Assembly (NCBI GenBank): GCA_037447605.1
Contig: CM074812.1
Coordinates: 3,224,001-3,288,000 of the forward strand
Direction: 5' to 3'
DNA: 64,000 nt
DNA from: Zygnema circumcarinatum SAG 698-1b
Taxonomy: Eukaryota; Plantae; Zygnematophyceae
The stretch's first letter is position 1. Every line of letters starts with the position of its first letter. Shown here piece by piece: positions 1,134 to 52,300 of this stretch. Under the pieces are notes generated by a model that had not been told where the DNA came from, searched no databases, and was given only the letters and a program-made list of their open reading frames with translations. Both the position numbers and the translations under genes were made by a program.

Positions 1134-5442
<4,309 letters not shown>

Positions 5443-7057
5443 TCCGAACCTCTCCCTACTTGTGAGAGGGAGAGAGAGAGAGAAAGTGAAGGAAGAGATA
5501 GAGAGAGTGAAGGAAGAGAGCGAGAGAGAGTGAAGGGAGGAAGAGAGAGAGTGAAGGGAGGGAGAGAGAGAGTGAAGGGAGAGAGAGAGTGTGAAGGGAG
5601 AGGGATGGAAGGAGGAGAGAGGAGTAGCGGAGGATTCCTGTTCTGGAATCTGTCCCTCTCTCTCGACTGCATTTCTCAGCTCATTTCGGCGACTCCCTTC
5701 TCCCATTCGCTACCTTCCAATCTCAAACCCATTTTCTCTCTTCTGTCCCTCTTCCTCACTCCTCTACCTCCTTACCTCCCTCTCTCCCCTTTTCTCTCCC
5801 TCCCTTCCTTCACACCCTCCTAACCTCCTCTCTCTCCCTCCCTCTCTCTCTCTTTCTCTCCCTCCCTGTCTCACAATTCCCACCCTCCCTCCTCCCCGCC
5901 CTCCTATCCCTCTCTCCCTCCCTCCCTCCCTCTCTCCCACTCGTTTACACCCTCCCTATCCTTCCCTTCCCTCCTTCCCTCTTCCTCTCTCTCGTCCTCC
6001 TCGCCCCTGCCCCCCTCTCTCTCCCTCCTCCCTCCTCCCTATTTTCTCCCCCCTCTCCCTCCCTCTCTCTCCGTCTCTCTCCCTCCTCCCTCCTCCCTCC
6101 TTTCTCCCCCCTCTCCCTCCCTCTCTCTCCGTCTCTTTCTCCCTCCTCCCTCCTTTCTCTCCCCTATCCCTCCCTCTCTCTCCGTCTCTCTCTCCCTCCC
6201 TCTCTCTCCGTCTCTCTTTCTCTCCCTCTCTCTCCGTCTCTCCCTCCCTCCCACCCTCCCTTCCTCCCTCTCCCCCCGTCTCTCTCTCCCTCCCTCCACT
6301 GTGACCTGTACGAGTCACAACCCGCCCTCCCCGCCTCCCTTAGTCGGTCCTCCCCAGCCCCGTTCAGTTCTCGTATCTGCCGGCCCTTCAAACGGACGGC
6401 GGATCGCCCGTGCATGGCCACCGATCGGACGGTCGGAAGTGCCTTGCACTGACGCGCTAGATCCTTCGCACGAGTCCAAAATATACGGACAGATACTGAC
6501 ACAAATGTACAAATCTGCCGCGGATCCCGCGGATCCGAGATCGGATATTCGGGATATTTCCAAATTTTTCTATTTCCGTACTTTGCCAAATGGCCATGTT
6601 GGGGCGGCCCTAAGGGACTATGGAATCGACTGTACGGATTTCAAGTACCCAATTTGCGGCAAAGTACCAGAAGGCGACAAAAATGTGTATGTAAGTCAAA
6701 TACGTACTTTGTATGTTTGCGGAAACGAACGAAAGTTTGTTTCTTGTGCGTGTCGTGGCTCGGGACCTGGCCGGACTCTTGGATTGACGCAGATACGTCA
6801 ATATCTGTTCGTACACATCCTAAAGGACAAGGCGTACGAAAGGGCTTTCCACTCATGGCGCGCGTGCTCGGCGGCTCGCAGCATTAATTGTCGCGTTGGG
6901 GCTTAAATGCGGGACGGAAGTTGGCCACTAGGTGCCTGCCACGTGTGGAATTAGTCGTTTAACTCTGTTTCTTCATGGTTTGGCGAGGTCGTCGATTTTT
7001 TGGGGGCGACTTCGAGAGGACCGACGCAGGGGGGGTACCCGGGAGGGGAGGGGGGGA

Positions 7058-38752: not shown

Positions 38753-39322
38753 TGTTACTCGGCTCGTACAATTCCATACACTATATCCGAACAAATGTTC
38801 CGTACGACTCTATGTACAATTGTACGGATCTCAACAATCCCCCTCTGATCCGTGCAATCACTACATCATTCCTATCAACTGAACACATGTGCGAAGAATC
38901 GCTCCAGATACTCCTTTTGTCATCATATCTGCCGCCTCTTCCGTCGTCCGTACGAATTCCACTCTGATCTTCTTCTTCTTGACGTGCTCCCTTATAAAGT
39001 GATAATAGAGATCAATGTGTTTTGACCTCTTGTGGTTGACGGGATTCTCTGTGAGTGCAATCGCTGATTTGTTGTCGATCAAAATCAAAATTGGATCTTG
39101 TGCATATCCACACTCCTGAAAAAATATCTTAAGCCATATTGCCTCCTTCGCCGCGTGACAAGCTGCCATGTACTCTGACTCAGTACTGGACAGCGCAACT
39201 GTCTCCTGTAACTTCGAATTCCATGTGATGCATCGTCCTCCACACATAAACACATATCCTGACGTGGACCTACCAGTATCAGCGTCTCCTCCCCAATCAA
39301 CGTCTGAATATCCGTACACCTG
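38753..39322 (-). mobile_element. Ty1/Copia 3' fragment (RNase H + PPT + start of 3' LTR) in intron 1 of the PLAT-like gene
   Basis: ORF 39319-38861 has GYSDVDWGGD..RSTSGYVF, VALSSTESEY, IDNKSAIAL.ENPVNHKRSKHIDLYYHFIRE and ADMMTK, followed by the purine tract AGAGGGGG and TGTTGAG at 38836. The distal LTR end is uncertain. Confidence 0.9.
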
Positions 39323-40206: not shown

Positions 40207-40798
40207 GCGGTAAGGCCTTGCATAGGAGCAGGAAGGAAGCAGCCTGTCCTCTCGGATAGAACCACGAGTTGCGAGCTCATGACTGACCCCGTCCTATCGC
40301 TCTCCCTCCCTTCCTCTCCTCCGCCCTGCTTCCCCATGCCCCCTTTCCCTCTCTCCATCCCTACCCGCTTCTTCTCTGGCCACCCTTCCCTCTCTCTCTC
40401 TCCTTCTCCCCTCGCCGTTCTCCCCTCTCCCCACTCCCTCTGCCCTCTGCCCACTCCCCCCTTCCCCCCCCGTCCCTCTCCCCTTCCCCCCCTCCAGCCT
40501 CCTCTCTCTCCCCCCCCTGCTTCCCACTCACTCTCTGCCACTCTCCCCTACTCTTTCTCTCTTCCCCCCCCTCTCTCTCTTCCCCCCTCCCCTACTCTCT
40601 CTCNNNNNNNNNNCCCGCCCTCTCTCTCTCGCACTCCCCCCCCCCCTTCCCTCTCTCTCCCCCACTCCCTCTCTCTCCCCCCCCCACCCCTCTCTCTCTC
40701 TCTCCCCCCTCTTCTGAAGTACCCTAAAAACCCTTCTAAACCGAATATTTAACCTTTCCTCTGTACGGTTAGGCTGGCTCACAACGTTTACTTAAGTA
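40207..40798 (+). repeat. Left copy of a about 600-bp direct duplication (intron segment including its GT donor)
   Basis: Sequence gcggtaaggccttgcataggagc...ggctggctcacaa..acttaagta is repeated at 47999-48645 with point differences. Confidence 0.9.
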
Positions 40799-40823: not shown

Positions 40824-41549
40824 TTAGGAAACGATTTTGGCCCATCCGTACACGTACCTGATCTTCGGGGATATTCCATACCCATACCAAGCGTACGATT
40901 CGGTAAACGGCCAGCTACTGTTTTGGGTCTTGAGCCATTTCCCGATCACCTGGTTGGTGATGGAGTAGTCAGAGCGAGCTACGGGCAGAACGTTTCCGGA
41001 AGCTCCGGGGATGAAGGTGGACCAGGGAATGAAGGAGCTAGAGAGGTAGATCCTGGCCAGCTGGGAGCCGTTGAGGCGGAGGGTGGCGGAGCCCGTCTTC
41101 TTGGAGCAGAAGGAGTAGGACACCGCGGCAAAGGGGATGGCGTACTTGCTGGATCCGAGGGTGTCCGCGCTGGGCGAGAAGGGAACTTCGGAGAAGGCGA
41201 CATCGAGGCTCCCGGACTTAAAATAAGTCAAGCCAGTGGCGGAGCCCCAGGATATGTACTGTCCGACGGAGGTGTAGCCAGGGGCGTAAGGAACGCTATT
41301 GAAGCCGTCTTTGGCCAGATTCATGATCTGCAAAGCGAACCGAAAAAGAAAGAAGCGCTCAGTATACCGCGGGGACCACGTCAACCGGGATCCAGCGATG
41401 ATGCGGTGGAAACAATTTCCACTGCGGCAGTAGTTGGAGACCACTCACCGACTCGAAGTATCTTGTTCCGCCATGACTGACGAGCTTCAAAGCGGAGGCG
41501 GCGGTGGCGGAGGCGAGAGGACGACGGCGACAAACCCGAGGTCTGCCAT
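40824..41549 (-). pseudogene. Truncated, frameshifted PstS-like paralogue (exon 1 41549-41449, exon 2 41327-40824)
   Basis: Collinear with the 44803 gene: same intron position and recognisably homologous intron, GSATG, VAFSEVP, IPFAAVSYSFCSKK, SGNVLPVARSD, SPKIRYV. Exon 1 is 101 nt (1-nt deletion) and the ORF stops after about 170 exon-2 codons at the cassette edge. Confidence 0.8.
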
Positions 41550-41694
41550 GACTTCAGAATAATCTGTATGACGCTGTTTGTCTGTAGTGAGACTCGACTT
41601 TACCCAAGAGATGAGCACGCACTCTAGAGATCCTCTGTTTGTCATGAGTGAGGACTAAAGCACCGCCACCCGCCCCCAGGCTACGCACGGACCC

Positions 41695-42130
41695 GCGGGC
41701 GGGCAGCCGCCACCGTACGGCGCGGTACTATTTGTCGCTTCCGCGGCAAAGCCGCCCCGGGCGCTGTCGCCCGACCAGTGGCGGCCGAGAGTCGGCGGAG
41801 GCGAAGAATCTTCGCAGAGGCCTAATGCGACAAAAAAAATGTGTCCGGGAATCTTCTCTGCGCGGCACGAGCGGGGACTGCAAGCCGCCACCGTACGGCG
41901 CATGTCGGCAGAGACGAGGAATCTTCGCAGAGGCCTAATGCGACAAACAAAATGTGTCTGGGCATCTTTTCTGCGCAGGCTCAGGCGGGGACGGCATCTT
42001 CAGGCGGGCAGCCGCCACCGTACGGCACGCGTCGGCGGAGGCAAGGAATCTTCGTAGTGGCCTAATGCGACAAACAAAATGTGTCCGGGAATCTTCTCTG
42101 CGCAGGCGCAGGCGGGGACGGCATCTTCGG
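41695..42130 (+). repeat. About 120-bp unit repeated 3 times, with an inverted homologue at about 43455-43640
   Basis: cagccgccaccgtacggc...gaatcttcgcagaggcctaatgcgacaaa..aatgtgtccgggaatcttctctgcgc recurs at about 41705, 41883 and 42010. Confidence 0.8.
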
Positions 42131-42183
42131 TCGGGCGGGCGGTCTTCGTGGGCTCGGGCTGTGGCTGACTTGTTTTTGTTTTT

Positions 42184-43254
42184 GGGTAGTGTTATTTCCA
42201 CCCCTTTTTTGGATCAAAACACCCCTTCCCGGCCGGGTAGATTTCAAAAAGGATTGAAAACGGAAAATGCTTTTTTCACACCTTTTTAAAATCGATACCC
42301 TCGATACGTCGGGCAAGTTTTTTTTTTGTGAAACAAGGAAAATGATACCCCATCACCCCATTTTGAATATCCCGCCTCCCTGAAATTTCCTTTCGAGGGA
42401 AAAAAATATCGTTCTGCCCGAATCCGCTCTGAGCTGAAGATCCGTCCACGAGATCGTTCGCGGGTGTGCGTCCTTCACAAGTGCAGTCAATCTCAGCCGT
42501 CGATTCCCTGGCAGATCGCCCCACGGCAGATAAGCCTTTGATCTGCCGGGCTCCATCCCAGCGAATGCCAAGCGCTCACGGGTCTCGCCAAAGCCGTATG
42601 GCACGTGCGAGTGCGCGCGTCCCTCGGCCCGAGATCTCCGCAAAATTATGAGCTGGACCGGCCAGCCTGCGGCGGCTCGCTATTGTCCGCTTCCAGCCAA
42701 TCAACATCTACCGCGTGTTATATTTATGACGTGGCACGTTTTGATTGGTTTAAGATCTAAATGTAATAATATTTTGCGTTTCCTCGAAGTTGCGACCGTA
42801 CGAAGTTTGTACGGACCCACTTTTGAGACGGCTTTGGCGGGATACGTGGGCACGTGTCATTTGCTGCGACCGAGCCCGGCTGAAGATCAAACGGTGATCT
42901 GCTGTGGTGCGATCTGCGAGGGAATTGGCGGCTGCGATTGACCACACGTGTGAGGACGCACACCCGGGAACGATCTCGTGGCGGAAGATCTTCCGCTAAG
43001 AGCGGATTCGGGCAGGCAGATATTTTTTTCCCTCAAAAAAAAAATTCAGGGAGGCGGGATATTCAAGATGGGGTGACGGGGTACTGTACCATTTTCCTAG
43101 TTTTGCTAAAATAAAATCTGCCCGACGGAAGAAGGTGGGGTATCGATTCCAAAAAGGTGTGAAAAAAGCATTTTCCGTTTATAATCCTTTTTGAAATCTG
43201 CCCGGCCGGGAAGGGCTGTTTTGATCCAAAAAAGGGGTGGAAATAACACTACCC
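42184..43254. mobile_element. Foldback/MULE-like non-autonomous element FB1 with long TIRs
   Basis: Ends GGGTAGTGTTATTTCCACCCC...GGGGTGGAAATAACACTACCC; inverted arms extend about 400 bp and are homologous to FB2; no TSD seen. Confidence 0.75.
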
Positions 43255-43290
43255 TAAATCGTGATGTGTAACCGTACAATCATCATACAA

Positions 43291-43451
43291 TAGGGGGTGT
43301 CAGACTTAACAAAATCTTACGAAAAGCGTTACGAAAAAAAAGGTTACGAAAGTACTCCGCCGCAGGAGGATCGCGATTATACTGGAGTACTCGTTCTGAT
43401 GTCAAACTTACGAACACGCGTACTGAAATTTTTTAAGTCTGACACCCCCTA
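43291..43451. mobile_element. Small MITE (161 bp), 19-bp TIR
   Basis: TAGGGGGTGTCAGACTTAA...TTAAGTCTGACACCCCCTA; a second copy lies at 63585-63716. No 8-bp TSD, so the superfamily is unresolved (TA TSD possible). Confidence 0.85.
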
Positions 43452-43650
43452 ATGGTACGTTCCGGAGAAGATGCCCGGGCCCCGGACACATTTTTTTTGT
43501 CGCATTGGTACGACTTCTGCGAAAATCCCGCGCCTCCGCTGACGTGCGTCATGTGGTTGGGGGGCGTGTGCCGACAAGTGCCTGACACAGCCTTGCGACT
43601 GAAGCGACAAATAGTGCCGCGTCGTACGGTGACGGCTGCCCGTCCTGGCC

Positions 43651-44627
43651 GGAAAATTCTATTCTCACACCTTTTTTGTCTACACACAGACCTTTTTTCG
43701 CCGGGCAGGTTCTATTTTAGAAAAAAATGGATAAAAAACGAAAAATGCGTTTATCACACCTTTCTGGGATCGATACAAACCTTTTTCCTTTGGGCAGATT
43801 TACCCCCTGATTTTTTTTTTTGGAGAGAAAGAATATCGGCTTGCCCGAATCTGCTATGAGCGGAAGATCCGTCCGCCACGAGATCGTTCGCGGGTGTGCG
43901 TCCTTTACACTTGCGGAGAATCTGCTCCGTCGAGTAACTCGCAGATCGCACAACGGCAGATCACCATTCGATCTGCAGTCGGGCTCGGTCCCAGCGAATG
44001 GCACGAGCCCACGTGTCCCACAAAATCCGGCTCAAAGTGGGTCCTTACAAACGCTGTACAGTCACACCTTCGAGGAAAGGTGAAATACCGTACACTGAGC
44101 GCCTGGACCAATTATAATTTTCCACGTCATTGACAATTACACGTGGCAGATGGTGATTGGCTGCTAGGCGAGCCGCAGCAGGCTGGCCGCTCCAGCTCAT
44201 AATTTTGCGGAGATCTCGGGCCAAGGCACGCGCACTCTAGCAAGTGCCAGCCGGCTTTGGCGGGAGACGTGGGCACGTGCCATTCGCTGGGACCGAGCCC
44301 GACTGCAGATCGAACGGTGATCTGCCGTTGTGCGATCTGCGAGAGAATCGACGGCGGAGATTCACCGCACTTGTGAAGGACGCACACCCGCGAACGATCT
44401 CGTGGCGGACGGATTTTCCGCTCCATCAGATTCGGAGAAAGCCGATATTTTTTCTCTCCAAAAAAAAAATCAGGGGTAAAATCTGCCCTACGGAAAAGGT
44501 TTGTATTGATTCCAGAAAGGTGTGAAAAAAGCATTTTTCGTTTTTTATCATTTATTTTCTTAAATAGAACCAGCCCGGCGAAAAAAGGTCTGTGTGAAAA
44601 AAAAAAGATGTGAGAATAGAATTTTCC
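43651..44627. mobile_element. Mutator-like (MULE) non-autonomous element FB2 (977 bp, about 390-bp TIRs)
   Basis: Ends GGAAAATTCTATTCTCAC...GTGAGAATAGAATTTTCC; 9-bp TSD with one mismatch, GTCCTGGCC (43642-43650) / GCCCTGGCC (44628-44636). Confidence 0.85.
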
Positions 44628-44720
44628 GCCCTGGCCGGGCTGGGCCGTACCTCCAGGCCGGAGATGCCGGCCGGTGGGCGCCGTCCGCGGGTCCGTGCGT
44701 GGCCGGGCGGCGGGTGGCGG

Positions 44721-44728
44721 GCTATAAA
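44721..44728 (+). promoter_or_regulatory. Candidate TATA box of the PstS-like gene
   Basis: GCTATAAA about 80 nt upstream of the ATG, at the end of a GC-rich proximal segment. Confidence 0.4.
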
Positions 44729-44802: not shown

Positions 44803-45934
44803 ATGGCTGCTCTTGTGTTAGTTGCCGTCGTCCTCCTCTTTGCCGCCGCCTCTGAGGCGCAAATTCGTATTGGTGGAGCCACCTCCTTCGCAGATGTGAG
44901 TGTTCTCCAATTTGCTGCAGTGGGAATTGTTTTTATCACATCGCTGTGCTCCGGTTGACATGGTTACCGTCATACTCAGCGCATGCCTTTTTGTGTCGGC
45001 TTTGCAGGTTGCGACGGAAGGAATGGCATCCGTTAGTGGTAATTTTCCTTTTACCGACGGCACCTTATCAAATTACCAGTCCGTTGGCTCCACTGCGGGT
45101 AAGGCTTCTTTCATTGACCGGGGTCTCGAGGTCGCCTACTCTGATGTTCCTCTCACTCTCGACGAGGATTCCCGCGCCGGTGGATCAGAGAAGCTCACCA
45201 TCCCCGTCGCCGTGGCGGCCTACTCCTTCTGCACACAGAAGAAGGGTGGCAACATTCTCCGCCTCTCTGCCTCCCAGCTGTTCAACATCTACACCTCCAA
45301 CTCCTTCATTCGCTGGTCCACCTACATATCCAAAGCATCTGGAAATGTTTTGCCCGTTGCTCGTTCGGACGACTCTGGCAGCACCCAGATGATCGGAACG
45401 TGGTTGAATTCTCAGGTGGCTGCTTGGCCCTACACGGATTCCATCAGCTGGAGGGGTAGGCCCGGAGTGTCCTCTAAAATCAGATACGTGAATGGTGCAA
45501 AGGAAATGTATCAGGCGCTTCGAAGTGACTCCAACAGGATCGGATACATTCAGGCTGGGGCATGCACGGCTACCAACGGCGTTCCCGCGGTGGCTATAAA
45601 TAATGCGGCCGGGAAATTCGTTGTGACGAATGCCAAATTGGACGTTGACTCGCTTATGCCCTCCCCTATCCCTGCTTACGATGGCTCGGAGTGGAGTGCT
45701 GTGAGTCTCATCAACAAGCCCGGGATCTCAACATATCCCATCGTCGGTATTGTCTACATGTTCGTCAGGAAAGACTATTATGATGGTGACGTCAACTATC
45801 TTGTGTATAAATGGGTGCAATTCTGCATGGGTAGCCAGGTACAGGATTTGAATCGATATTACGGTTTTTACCCGATCCCGTATCCGTATCGCGGGGCTGG
45901 TAATGCCGCAGCCGATCTCATTTCTGTTAATTAA
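44803..45934 (+). CDS. Secreted PstS-like phosphate-binding protein (PBP type 2), 2 exons (44803-44895, 45008-45934), 339 aa
   Basis: Signal peptide MAALVLVAVVLLFAAASEA; PstS hallmarks GGATSF, NYQSVGSTAG, AYSDVPL, VARSDDSGST, IGYI, INNAAGKFV and LINKPGISTYPIVGIVYMFVRKD, collinear with E. coli PstS as recalled; in-phase GT-AG intron of 112 nt. Confidence 0.88.
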
Positions 45935-47998: not shown

Positions 47999-48645
47999 GC
48001 GGTAAGGCCTTGCATAGGAGCAGGAAGGAAGCAGCCTGTCCACTCGGATAGAACCACGAGTTGCGAGCTCATGACTGACCCCGTCCTATCGCTCTCCCTC
48101 CCTTCCTCTCCTCCGCCCTGCTTCCCCATGCCCCCTATCCCTCTCTCCATCCCTACCCGCTTCTTCTCTGGCCACCCTTCCCTCTCTCTCTCTCTCTCCT
48201 TCTCCCCTCGCCGTTCCATTATATATGTGATGTAGTATGCATCTTTACATAGTTGTGTTATGTTTCTCCCCTCTCCCCACTCCCTCTGCCCTCTGCCCAC
48301 TCCCCCCTTCCCCCCCCGTCCCTCCCCCCTCCCCCCCCTCCAGCCTCCCCTCTCTCCCCCCCCTGCTTCCCACTCACTCTCTGCCACTCTCCCCTACTCT
48401 TTCTCTCTTCCCCCCCTTCTCTCTCCCTCCCCCTTCTCTCTCTCCCCTCCCTCCCTCTCTCTCCCGCCCCCTCTCTCTCGCACTCCCCCCCCCCTCCCTC
48501 TCTCTCCCACCCTCCCTCTCTCTCCCCCCCCTCCCTCTCTCTCTCTCTCTTTCCCCTCTTCTGAAGTACCCTAAAAACCCTTCTAAACCGAATATTTTTC
48601 CTTTCCTCTGTACGGTTAGGCTGGCTCACAAGGTGTACTTAAGTA
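47999..48645 (+). repeat. Right copy of the about 600-bp direct duplication
   Basis: Matches 40207-40798, with a about 48-bp AT-rich insertion (about 48216-48263) and SNPs. Confidence 0.9.
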
Positions 48646-49337: not shown

Positions 49338-52300
49338 TCAGCAACAGTTAGAATTCCGCTCCCCAGACACTCCCTCCTTCCCTCTTCCGCCTCCATCTCC
49401 CCCTCCCTCTCCCTCTCCCTCTCCCTCTCCCTCTCCCCCTCCCTCTCCCTCTTCCTCTCCCTCTCCCTCCGCAACCCCCTCTCCATCGCCAGCCGCTTTA
49501 CTGGACCCCTCTACCTCTCCCTCCCCTTCTCCCTCACCGCCTCCCTTGGCCCCACTTTCCTCTCCCTCCCCCTCTCCCCCTCCTCTCCCCCCCCCGCTAC
49601 TTCCGCTTGCCGAGCCGGAGGAGGAGGAGGCGGGAGGCTCCGGCGGGAGGCTCGGGCCAGGTCGGGGCGGAGGGTCGGGAGGCTGCAACTCCACGTCCGG
49701 GTACGCGGCTCGGAAGCGTGCGCGCACCTCCGAATCGACTAGTCGCACACCTTCGAGCTGGTTGCCAAGGGATATCCACCTGCGGAATGATGCACCTTTA
49801 CCCCCGGCTCAGAAGGGGAGAGAGAAGGGACGAGAAGAAAAGAAAGGGAAGAAGGGGAGAGGGGGAGAAGGGGGAGAAGGGGGAGAAGGGGGAGAAGGGG
49901 GGCAAGGGGGAGAAGGGGGAGAAGGGNNNNNNNNNNGGGGAGAAGGGGGAGAAGGGAGAGAGGGGGAGAGGGGGGAGAGTGGGGAGAGGAGGGAGAGGGG
50001 GGAGAGGGGGTGGAGGGGGGGAGGCGGGAGGGGGGGAAAGGGAGAGAGCAGAAAGGACACGTTCCAAACTTGCGTCGAGGTAAAAGAAAAGTCGCGCTCG
50101 GCTCTCTCGACAATGGCTTATACTAGGGTTTCTTTTGAATTTTCTTTAGGGTATTTTTTTGACAGCACACAACACTGAGGCAGAAGGAGCAGGAGGTGAG
50201 GATTACCCTGCGTGAGTGTTGTGCATGCGAGCGAACATCTCCAACTTGCGCGTGTTGGGGCTCACTCGCTCTAGCAAGGGGTACATCTGCTAAAGCCACA
50301 GCCCAAAGCCGGAGCCACAACCGAGGCTCAGACGAATCCCTGGTGATCCCAATTCTCTCTCCACTCTCTCCTCCCTCTCCCTCTCCTGCTCTCCCTTTCC
50401 ATTGCCCCTCCGCCCCCCTGGTCTCCTTCGTCTTCAGTCCTCCCACCCCCCTCACTCTCCTTCCCTCCACCCTCCAATCCGTCCTCTCCACCCCTCCCTC
50501 TTTCCCGCTTTCCACTCCCTCCTTCCCCTTTCTCTCCCACTGACTCCTCCCTGCCTCTTCTCCCTCTCTTCCCTTCTCCTCCTTCTCTCCCTCCCCCCTT
50601 CTCTCTGCCTCGAGGTCCCTGCCTCCTCCCTTCCCCTCCCCTCCCTCCCTCCCTCTCCTCTACCTTCTCCCTTCCTCTTTCCTCCCTCGTCCCTCCCTCT
50701 CCCCTCCGCTTCCTCCCTCTCCCCTCGTCCCTCTCGTCCCCTCCCCCTTCCATCCCCCTTCCCCTCCCTCCCCTCTCCCTCCCTCCTTCCTTCTCCCTCC
50801 CTCTCCCCTGCTCCCCTCCCCTTTCCTCCCTCTCCCCCCCCCCTCCCCCACCCCACTTCTTTCTCCCCTCCTCCCCCTCCCTCCCCCAATCTCTCCCTCC
50901 CCTCCTCCCCCTCCCTCCCCCAATCCCTNNNNNNNNNNGGGGAGAAGGGGGAGAAGGGAGAGAGGGGGAGAGGGGGGAGAGTGGGGAGAGGAGGGAGAGG
51001 GGGGAGAGGGGGTGGAGGGGGGGAGGCGGGAGGGGGGAAAGGGAGAGAGCAGAAAGGACACGTTCCAAACTTGCGTCGAGGTAAAAGAAAAGTCGCGCTC
51101 GGCTCTCTCGACAATGGCTTATACTAGGGTTTCTTTTGAATTTTCTTTAGGGTATTTTTTTGACAGCACACAACACTGAGGCAGAAGGAGCAGGAGGTGA
51201 GGATTACCCTGCGTGAGTGTTGTGCATGCGAGCGAACATCTCCAACTTGCGCGTGTTGGGGCTCACTCGCTCTAGCAAGGGGTACATCTGCTAAAGCCAC
51301 AGCCCAAAGCCGGAGCCACAACCGAGGCTCAGACGAATCCCTGGTGATCCCAATTCTCTCTCCACTCTCTCCTCCCTCTCCCTCTCCTGCTCTCCCTTTC
51401 CATTGCCCCTCCGCCCCCCTGGTCTCCTTCGTCTTCAGTCCTCCCACCCCCCTCACTCTCCTTCCCTCCACCCTCCAATCCGTCCTCTCCACCCCTCCCT
51501 CTTTCCCGCTTTCCACTCCCTCCTTCCCCTTTCTCTCCCACTGACTCCTCCCTGCCTCTTCTCCCTCTCTTCCCTTCTCCTCCTTCTCTCCCTCCCCCCT
51601 TCTCTCTGCCTCGAGGTCCCTGCCTCCTCCCTTCCCCTCCCCTCCCTCCCTCCCTCTCCTCTACCTTCTCCCTTCCTCTTTCCTCCCTCGTCCCTCCCTC
51701 TCCCCTCCGCTTCCTCCCTCTCCCCTCGTCCCTCTCGTCCCCTCCCCCTTCCATCCCCCTTCCCCTCCCTCCCCTCTCCCTCCCTCCTTCCTTCTCCCTC
51801 CCTCTCCCCTGCTCCCCTCCCCTTTCCTCCCTCTCCCCCCCCCCTCCCCCACCCCACTTCTTTCTCCCCTCCTCCCCCTCCCTCCCCCAATCTCTCCCTC
51901 CCCTCCTCCCCCTCCCTCCCCCAATCCCTNNNNNNNNNNTCCCTCCCTCCCCTCCTCCCCCTCCCTCCCCCAATCCCTCCCTCCCCCCACAACGCACCTC
52001 GTCCGGCTTGCGAGAGGTCTCCCGCACTTCGGCTACGAGCACATCTGTGTCCAGGTGGCGGTTCAGGAGTGGTCTGCCCTTCACGCCAACGAGGCAATGC
52101 TCTTTGGAGTGGTTCAGCCAATGGCCGGTCCGCCCTGTGCGGATAATGCGCTGCAGCTGATTGGTCTTCACCCATATCACCTCCTCCACTCGCTGGTAAC
52201 CCCACAGCTCAAGACTGCCCCTCTCCCACACCCCCTCTCTCCCTCTCTCTCGTCAGACCGAATGCAGGGCCACTTCTCTACCTCGGTTTGCCCCCTATCT

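Follow-up and report, generated by a model that had tools for sequence, protein, structure and literature searches.

Among the closest described systems for the gene that concerns us here are the bacterial and cyanophage phosphate-binding proteins of the PstS type. In cyanobacterial PstS1, D-type sites owe their nanomolar affinity for inorganic phosphate (Pi) to an aspartate, and proteins that lack this residue bind more weakly (PMC13614923). The PstS superfamily also includes the DING proteins, phosphate binders whose eukaryotic genes are reported to be missing from the databases (PMC2817009, PMC2225411). Among algae of a different lineage, a 2011 survey lists diatom genes for a 'Phosphate-binding protein PstS' that encode a signal peptide and have a prokaryotic affinity (PMC3237598). 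Here we describe a PstS-like gene of the zygnematophyte Zygnema circumcarinatum SAG 698-1b, located in a stretch of 64,000 nucleotides (positions 3,224,001 to 3,288,000 of contig CM074812.1, assembly GCA_037447605.1) that we denote the window and within which all positions below are counted. The best explanation for this gene, which we consider fairly probable, is that it encodes an intact, secreted orphan phosphate binder with the PstS fold that belongs to an old family of Zygnematophyceae. Phosphate is a main limit to growth in the oligotrophic, semi-terrestrial habitats of these algae, and the way in which it is gathered in the sister lineage of land plants is relevant to what was passed on to the earliest land plants and what disappeared in them.

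Gene structure and family

The gene is nuclear and truly spliced, and its host is an alga of the plant lineage (Table 1). Its open frame of 339 codons is intact, with canonical splice sites, and exon 1 consists, in this order, of a short hydrophobic stretch of the signal type, the junction SEA|Q and the motif IGGATSFAD, with a predicted mature N-terminus of QIRIGGATS and a mature length of about 320 amino acids. The assignment of the signal peptide follows these features of the sequence and the occurrence of such a peptide in all of the gene's family; the layout of exon 1 agrees with that of the ten family N-termini compared. The intron is placed eight codons past the first G of GGATS (GGATSFAD| in the window). 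Both a spliceosomal intron and a eukaryotic signal peptide had been claimed in a first-pass annotation made from the sequence alone, and both stand: the GT-AG intron sits at a site common to two Closterium genes, and a signal peptide in the same arrangement recurs in the N-termini of the family.

Relatives of the protein are distant. A word-index search of 5.8 billion protein clusters with exon 2 gave three weak matches to lipoproteins of the actinobacterial type, and the same kind of search with the family alignment considered 8000 candidates and returned one protein; an exhaustive HMMER search yielded 541 proteins at E <= 0.001. The N-termini of the best matches from the exhaustive search fall into three kinds. 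The first is the family of the gene itself, made up of proteins of about 330 amino acids in which a eukaryote-type signal peptide directly precedes GGA(T/S)S, the same layout as in the window gene. The second comprises multi-domain algal proteins of 900-1800 amino acids that start with HGSGTTNPSK, among which Mesostigma viride and an MMETSP transcript could be named as sources, and the third consists of ordinary bacterial PstS, many with lipoprotein signals. All source-named members of the family or of its sister group are Zygnematophyceae, namely, in the family, Mesotaenium endlicherianum (e.g. ME000013S00800/00797; two adjacent pairs), Spirogloea muscicola (e.g. SM000365S13725/13721; two of its genes lie about 7 kb from each other in divergent orientation) and several Closterium strains (e.g. 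CAI5530945, CAI5487174), and, in the sister group, Netrium digitus. Further relatives come from transcript-like, single-gene contigs of 1.1-1.5 kb, and one lies on a metagenome contig beside a retrotransposon integrase.

A careful maximum likelihood tree of 68 rows places the window protein in a clade of 27 rows with ultrafast bootstrap (UFBoot) and Shimodaira-Hasegawa-like approximate likelihood ratio (SH-aLRT) supports of 100/99, and joins this clade with the sister group at 99/98; in a quick tree of 152 rows, the window protein likewise falls within the family (SH-aLRT 95-98). In the careful tree, the family and its sister group are separate from the PstS of E. coli, from the lipoproteins and from cyanophage PstS. 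The position of the window protein within its clade is not settled by this tree, and the multi-domain algal family is joined to that of the window protein in the quick tree but not in the careful one. The intron provides a second line of evidence. We compared its site with two genomic loci of Closterium, L007 (intron at 6118-6307) and L008 (6103-6264), and site and phase are identical: each of these genes has one phase-0 intron, eight codons after the first G of the motif (GGAQPLEP| and GGASTFAT|). Next to these homologues lie genes for an aminotransferase and a syntaxin, both of the usual eukaryotic kind with introns. The common intron, which in itself argues for long residence in these algal genomes, the subclades that each include different genera and the signal peptide of the eukaryote type together argue for an old, multi-branched family that was vertically inherited in Zygnematophyceae. 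As for the ultimate donor, an ancient bacterial or cyanobacterial origin is possible. No land plant is found among the 31 relatives that could be named, and a loss of the family in the ancestry of land plants is therefore conceivable. The idea of a special domestication event at this locus, put forward in the first-pass annotation, does not survive the well-supported clade, all-Zygnematophyceae by name, and the intron common to Closterium; the family is a vertically inherited algal one, but not a characterised one. We found in the literature no functional study of the Zygnematophyceae PstS-like family and no zygnematophyte genus linked to PstS, a phosphate-binding protein or a phosphate ABC (ATP-binding cassette) transporter; the papers found on PF12849, the Pfam family to which the protein belongs, deal with bacteria or with fusions of G-protein-coupled receptors.

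Could the gene instead have been imported recently from a bacterium, or be a contaminant of the assembly? The fold and the family are typically bacterial, and metagenome sources label the relatives 'ABC-type phosphate transport substrate-binding protein'. Such an origin is contradicted by the spliceosomal intron at the site common to Closterium, by the presence of a eukaryote-type signal peptide rather than a lipobox, by the plant-type genes and retroelements that flank the gene on the same contig, and by the algal affinity of its nearest relatives, which do not group with the PstS of E. coli, of the lipoprotein kind or of cyanophages. On these grounds, we exclude recent bacterial import and contamination, to which we attach only a very small probability.

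Fold, phosphate site and transporter partners

Exon 2 and exon 1 were used separately in all sequence searches, and the AlphaFold model and the Foldseek search described here were made with exon 2. This exon scores 55 bits for the Pfam family PBP_like_2 (PF12849), whose cut-off is 27 (E 1.4e-14, with positions 40-249 covered in a profile of 267), and its best NCBIfam match is PstS (TIGR00975, E 6.7e-20). In a phmmer search against all PDB sequences, the top matches are PstS chains, aligned over nearly their full length (E 7.6e-8 for the cyanophage Syn19 PstS, 7xg7, and 6.5e-4 for E. coli PstS, 1ixh). By these matches, the protein is a PstS relative and a member of the PstS/PBP_like_2 superfamily. 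The AlphaFold model, which took an alignment of 30 relatives as input, has a mean predicted local distance difference test (pLDDT) value of 87.7 and a predicted template modelling (pTM) score of 0.86; its uncertain part is confined to the first 20 residues, which would pack against the exon-1 strand that lies outside the model. A two-lobe, type II periplasmic binding-protein fold is predicted, and the nearest structures are those of PstS. The best-ranked Foldseek matches are phosphate-bound PstS (template modelling (TM) scores of 0.72-0.76, E 1e-16 to 5e-19), led by Xanthomonas 8ods, M. tuberculosis PstS-1 and the cyanophage, Yersinia and E. coli PstS, and all of the top 18 are PstS or PhoX phosphate binders (query-normalised score, TMq, 0.71-0.76).

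The phosphate ligands were read from the HMMER alignment of exon 2 to E. coli PstS 1ixh and are numbered within exon 2. The segment VGSTAG, aligned to IGSSGG of E. coli PstS, supplies S28, the equivalent of S38; VAYSDVPL, aligned to FGASDAPL, supplies D46 (D56); and VARSDDSGST, aligned to VRRADGSGTS, supplies R119, D121, S123 and G124 (R135, D137, S139 and G140). At these six positions the residues are identical, and the equivalent of T10 is located in the GGATS of exon 1, where it was assigned solely by motif comparison with the family N-termini; the conserved PstS ligands that the first-pass annotation had listed are thereby recovered. To its list can be added S125, which takes the place of E. 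coli T141 in a conservative Thr-to-Ser change. With the ligand set kept, including the Asp56-equivalent, the protein would be a D-type binder as PMC13614923 uses the term and counts among the members of the family with complete ligands; the R135-equivalent is invariant among the 30 aligned relatives. Two subfamilies are extended at the C-terminus by a short tail with a Pro-Phe-type motif at its end, e.g. ...ARGVK-VPF (in the alignment, P0015, P0019, P0050, P0053, P0018, P0035, P0082 and P0144), and one of the two has additionally lost the Asp56-equivalent; the tail and this loss suggest functional divergence within the algal PstS-like family.

What could such a protein work with? A tblastn search of the 64-kb window with E. 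coli PstC, PstA, PstB and PhoU found none of them (best E 0.15), which confirms the initial remark that pstC/A/B are absent here and extends it to phoU; pst partner genes are also absent beside the two Closterium homologues and one metagenomic homologue, and a Pst permease in these algae is not described in the literature. Since a PstCAB partner is not evident in the DNA covered by these searches, which amounts to less than a whole genome, the role of an orphan binding protein appears most likely. Under this scenario, a soluble protein of about 320 residues would enter the secretory pathway and adopt the two-lobe, 'Venus flytrap' fold of PstS; given the complete D-type site with its Asp56-equivalent, its most likely ligand would be inorganic phosphate, or a very similar tetrahedral oxyanion, bound with high affinity on the outer side of the plasma membrane. 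Within the wall or mucilage, the orphan binder might then hold or buffer phosphate, where this is scarce, for the Pi symporters that eukaryotes ordinarily use or, as an alternative within the same model, report external Pi. The role put forward in the first-pass annotation, extracellular capture that would feed PHT/PTB transporters, is likewise a proposal. A secreted binder of the bacterial type without its transporter would, if true, be an unusual solution; that such ABC-transporter-free working represents a mode of eukaryotic phosphate acquisition not described so far is a tentative proposition, which we ourselves rather doubt.

The main functional rival is a hidden membrane partner: the protein would be the binding subunit of an unrecognised, diverged ABC permease or of a receptor, encoded elsewhere in the genome, and would take part in transport or signalling as in bacteria instead of being a free phosphate buffer. 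Eukaryotic genes need not cluster, so absence from 64 kb proves little; furthermore, binding proteins of bacteria can also deliver to chemoreceptors and sensor kinases (PMC8050422), and the predicted fold and cleft are fully PstS-like. This possibility has to contend with the lack of pstC/A/B not only in the window but also beside the Closterium and metagenomic homologues, and with a literature that describes no Pst permease in these algae, and we regard it as quite improbable.

The mirror copy, the promoter and the surrounding DNA

The intact gene faces, at a distance of 3.2 kb, an inverted, head-to-head and partial copy of itself (Table 1). The duplicated segment starts with about 145 nucleotides of promoter, takes in exon 1 and the intron, and extends over 167 codons from the start of exon 2; the homology runs out at a stop codon around 40827, and nothing in the window corresponds to the C-terminal 140 residues. 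An 8-nucleotide insertion leads to a premature stop, the TATAAA of the intact gene reads TTTAGT, the equivalents of D56 and G140 are replaced by Glu and Ile, respectively, and the homology breaks off at a stop codon; for these reasons, the partner copy is a dead pseudogene. Thus, of the 'expansion by local duplication' suggested in the first-pass annotation, there remains a single inverted, partial copy that is frameshifted and truncated, that is, one failed duplicate, and the locus clearly illustrates how genes of this family arise and die, since the intact gene has its dead mirror image as a neighbour. Two copies of a 0.6-kb GA/CT-rich repeat flank the pseudogene, the spacer and the intact gene. 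A 10-N gap lies within the repeat that adjoins the truncated end of the partner copy, so a mis-join of the assembly is conceivable. The spacer itself is filled with inverted repeats with arms of 50-175 nucleotides that are 78-94% complementary, resembling repeated insertions of miniature inverted-repeat transposable elements (MITEs), and contains a 127-nucleotide unit tandemly tripled at 41770-42136.

Table 1. Features of the PstS-like locus, with positions counted from the first letter of the window
Feature	Position	Strand	Basis and remarks
Intact PstS-like gene, two exons	44803-45934	+	Sequence read and exon matches
Exon 1, 31 codons	44803-44895	+	ATG at 44803; signal-peptide-like stretch MAALVLVAVVLLFAAASEA, then QIRIGGATSFAD with the Thr10-equivalent loop
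Spliceosomal intron, 112 nucleotides, phase 0	44896-45007	+	GTGAGT...TTGCAG, pyrimidine-rich 3' end
Exon 2, 308 codons and TAA, in frame	45008-45934	+	Body of the PstS-type two-lobe binding protein
TATAAA, candidate TATA box	44723-44728	+	About 75 nucleotides 5' of the ATG; sequence read, alignment with partner copy
GC-rich block, candidate shared promoter element	44681-44720	+	Inverted repeat and pairwise alignment; putative regulatory role
Partner copy, inverted, head-to-head, partial	41549-40824	-	tblastn, list of open reading frames, alignment
Partner exon-1 remnant	41449-41549	-	8-nucleotide insertion in the signal-peptide region, stop after 20 codons; homologous reading ...HGGTRYFES out of frame with the ATG
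Partner intron, 121 nucleotides, GT...AG	41328-41448	-	Homologous to the intron of the intact gene, same site
Partner exon-2 remnant	40824-41327	-	47% identical to intact exon-2 residues 1-167; tblastn, translation, alignment
GA/CT-rich dispersed repeat, 0.6 kb	40207-40798		Adjacent to the point where the partner copy breaks off; assembly gap of 10 N at 40604-40613
Second copy of the 0.6-kb repeat	47999-48645	same orientation	90-97% identical; 2 kb 3' of the intact gene
3-kb spacer between the head-to-head copies	41650-44650		Nested short inverted and direct repeats, MITE-like

Upstream of the intact gene, the GC-rich block is about 90% conserved with the corresponding region of the partner copy (41663-41702), which makes it a candidate promoter element shared by both copies. 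Several findings weigh against an active phosphate binder. The motif GNATATNC, the P1BS site of PHR1-type regulators, occurs 12 times in the window against 5.5 expected, but the 1.7 kb around the ATG are free of it; the closest sites are found in repeats 1.7-2.4 kb upstream, and the two nearest represent one site in each arm of a single inverted repeat. With P1BS missing near the promoter, control of the PHR1 type is without support. The score against TIGR00975 is 71.4 bits, compared to an equivalog cut-off of 205, and the protein is not an equivalog of bacterial PstS. Of the 30 aligned relatives, 9 have another residue in place of the Asp56-equivalent; a function in phosphate binding is therefore not clearly conserved in the family as a whole. 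The window protein has the longest branch of its clade (0.94-1.1 versus a median of 0.44-0.58), which could reflect relaxed constraint. Finally, it is at most 33-35% identical to any family member, and neither the word-index nor the exhaustive search returned a protein of more than 35% identity, so a transcript- or genome-derived copy of this gene is not part of those collections.

These findings lead to the question whether the intact copy is a silent or decaying paralogue, with a frame that is still open in a gene no longer expressed or needed. The long branch, the lack of a near-identical protein in very large collections of transcripts and genomes, and the position among invading repeats, close to a duplicate that has become a pseudogene, are all compatible with this scenario. 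It is less easily reconciled with the undamaged 339-codon frame and its canonical splice sites, with the TATAAA that the dead copy has lost, or with the pattern of sequence conservation: the protein keeps all ligand residues and 38 of the 46 family-conserved columns, which makes it 13th of 31 and mid-range for the family, and the changes at conserved columns are mostly conservative (I/V, F/I, L/V, T/A). We consider a silent copy unlikely, and prefer the reading in which the intact gene is presumably expressed and its product secreted.

The window as a whole is, judging by an SBP-box exon, an MT-A70 exon and copia-type fragments, plant-lineage nuclear DNA; the gene tree and the shared intron appear to point to a 'Zygnematophyceae-type' source, and the SBP-box exon to the green plant lineage. 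On the minus strand, the open reading frame (ORF) at 4435-5706 encodes at its end positions 1-47 of an SBP (SQUAMOSA-promoter-binding) domain (E 1.3e-14); it is likely to be an exon of a gene for an SPL transcription factor, a plant-specific type. Another minus-strand ORF, at 51329-52231, contains a segment of an MT-A70 domain (N6-methyladenosine, m6A, methyltransferase; E 4.2e-23), and just upstream of it is a 300-nucleotide direct repeat (49998-50297 and 50999-51298, 1 kb apart, 95% identical). The translation of a third ORF, at 38861-39319 on the minus strand, 1.5 kb from the pseudogene, resembles the C-terminal, RNase H-like part of a copia-type polyprotein, with no Pfam match at E 0.001. 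Between 26491 and 31816 extends a 5.2-kb, strongly strand-biased, CT-rich satellite with about 52 copies of units of 101-103 nucleotides (81-89% matches), which yields spurious ORFs of 1700-1800 codons; GA/CT-rich tracts related to it are found at 36.4, 38.0, 40.3, 48.3 and 50.6-51.8 kb.

Comparison with described systems

The PstS proteins as a class commonly carry a GxGAT motif near the N-terminus. It is this motif that underlies the proposal, also made in the first-pass annotation, that the GGAT of the mature protein echoes the DING N-terminus, DINGGGATL, and hence the possibility that the window contains the long-sought eukaryotic gene for a DING protein. DING proteins such as those of Pseudomonas fluorescens (2q9t) and the 'human' HPBP (2v3q) do share with the window protein the PstS superfamily, a phosphate-binding cleft and the GGAT near the N-terminus, and the reported absence of eukaryotic DING genes from the databases lends the idea some appeal. 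The resemblance, however, extends to PstS at large. The DING chains match exon 2 by phmmer over residues 50-147 only, a span of 98 residues with E 1.6e-3, more weakly than eleven PstS sequences, the best of which aligns at full length with E 7.6e-8; in the Foldseek ranking, they stand lower, with target-normalised scores (TMt) of 0.56-0.62 versus 0.68-0.78 for the best-ranked PstS chains; and the predicted mature protein does not start with DINGGG and has about 320 amino acids rather than the approximately 375 of DING. Taken together, these differences in N-terminus, length, sequence and structure rule out a DING identity, to which we give hardly any credence, and the DING puzzle is not solved by this locus.

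The bacterial and cyanophage D-type PstS (1ixh, 8ods, 7xg7) are closer, with the same predicted two-lobe fold (TM about 0.75), a similar size, the same phosphate ligands, among them the aspartate of the Asp56 type and the R135-D137 pair, and an N-terminal export signal. At the protein level, the differences consist in an identity of only 18-25%, a score below the TIGR00975 cut-off and the serine at the T141 position; at the gene level, the signal is of the eukaryote type and not of the Sec/lipoprotein type, there is a spliceosomal intron, and no pstCAB-phoU operon lies nearby. The multi-domain algal proteins with PstS repeats (Mesostigma viride Mv02212 and the MMETSP protein) are, like the window protein, eukaryotic and endowed with a signal peptide and a PstS domain, and no protein of the exhaustive search scored higher in total than that of Mesostigma (E 1.5e-46), but they consist of 2-5 tandem PstS domains within their much greater length, start with another motif and form a separate clade. 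The diatom PstS genes resemble the window gene in their location in an algal nuclear genome, in the signal peptide and in the lack of a functional study.

The system to which the gene belongs is the Zygnematophyceae family itself. The window gene shares with it the 100/99 clade, the combination of signal peptide and GGA(T/S)S and, in Closterium, the site of the phase-0 intron, and the genes of this family often come in adjacent or inverted pairs. The locus adds a further member and not a new kind; the interest lies in the family, to which it contributes a ligand-complete (D-type) but fast-evolving protein: the window protein keeps the full D-type ligand set, whereas nearly a third of the aligned relatives have replaced the aspartate.

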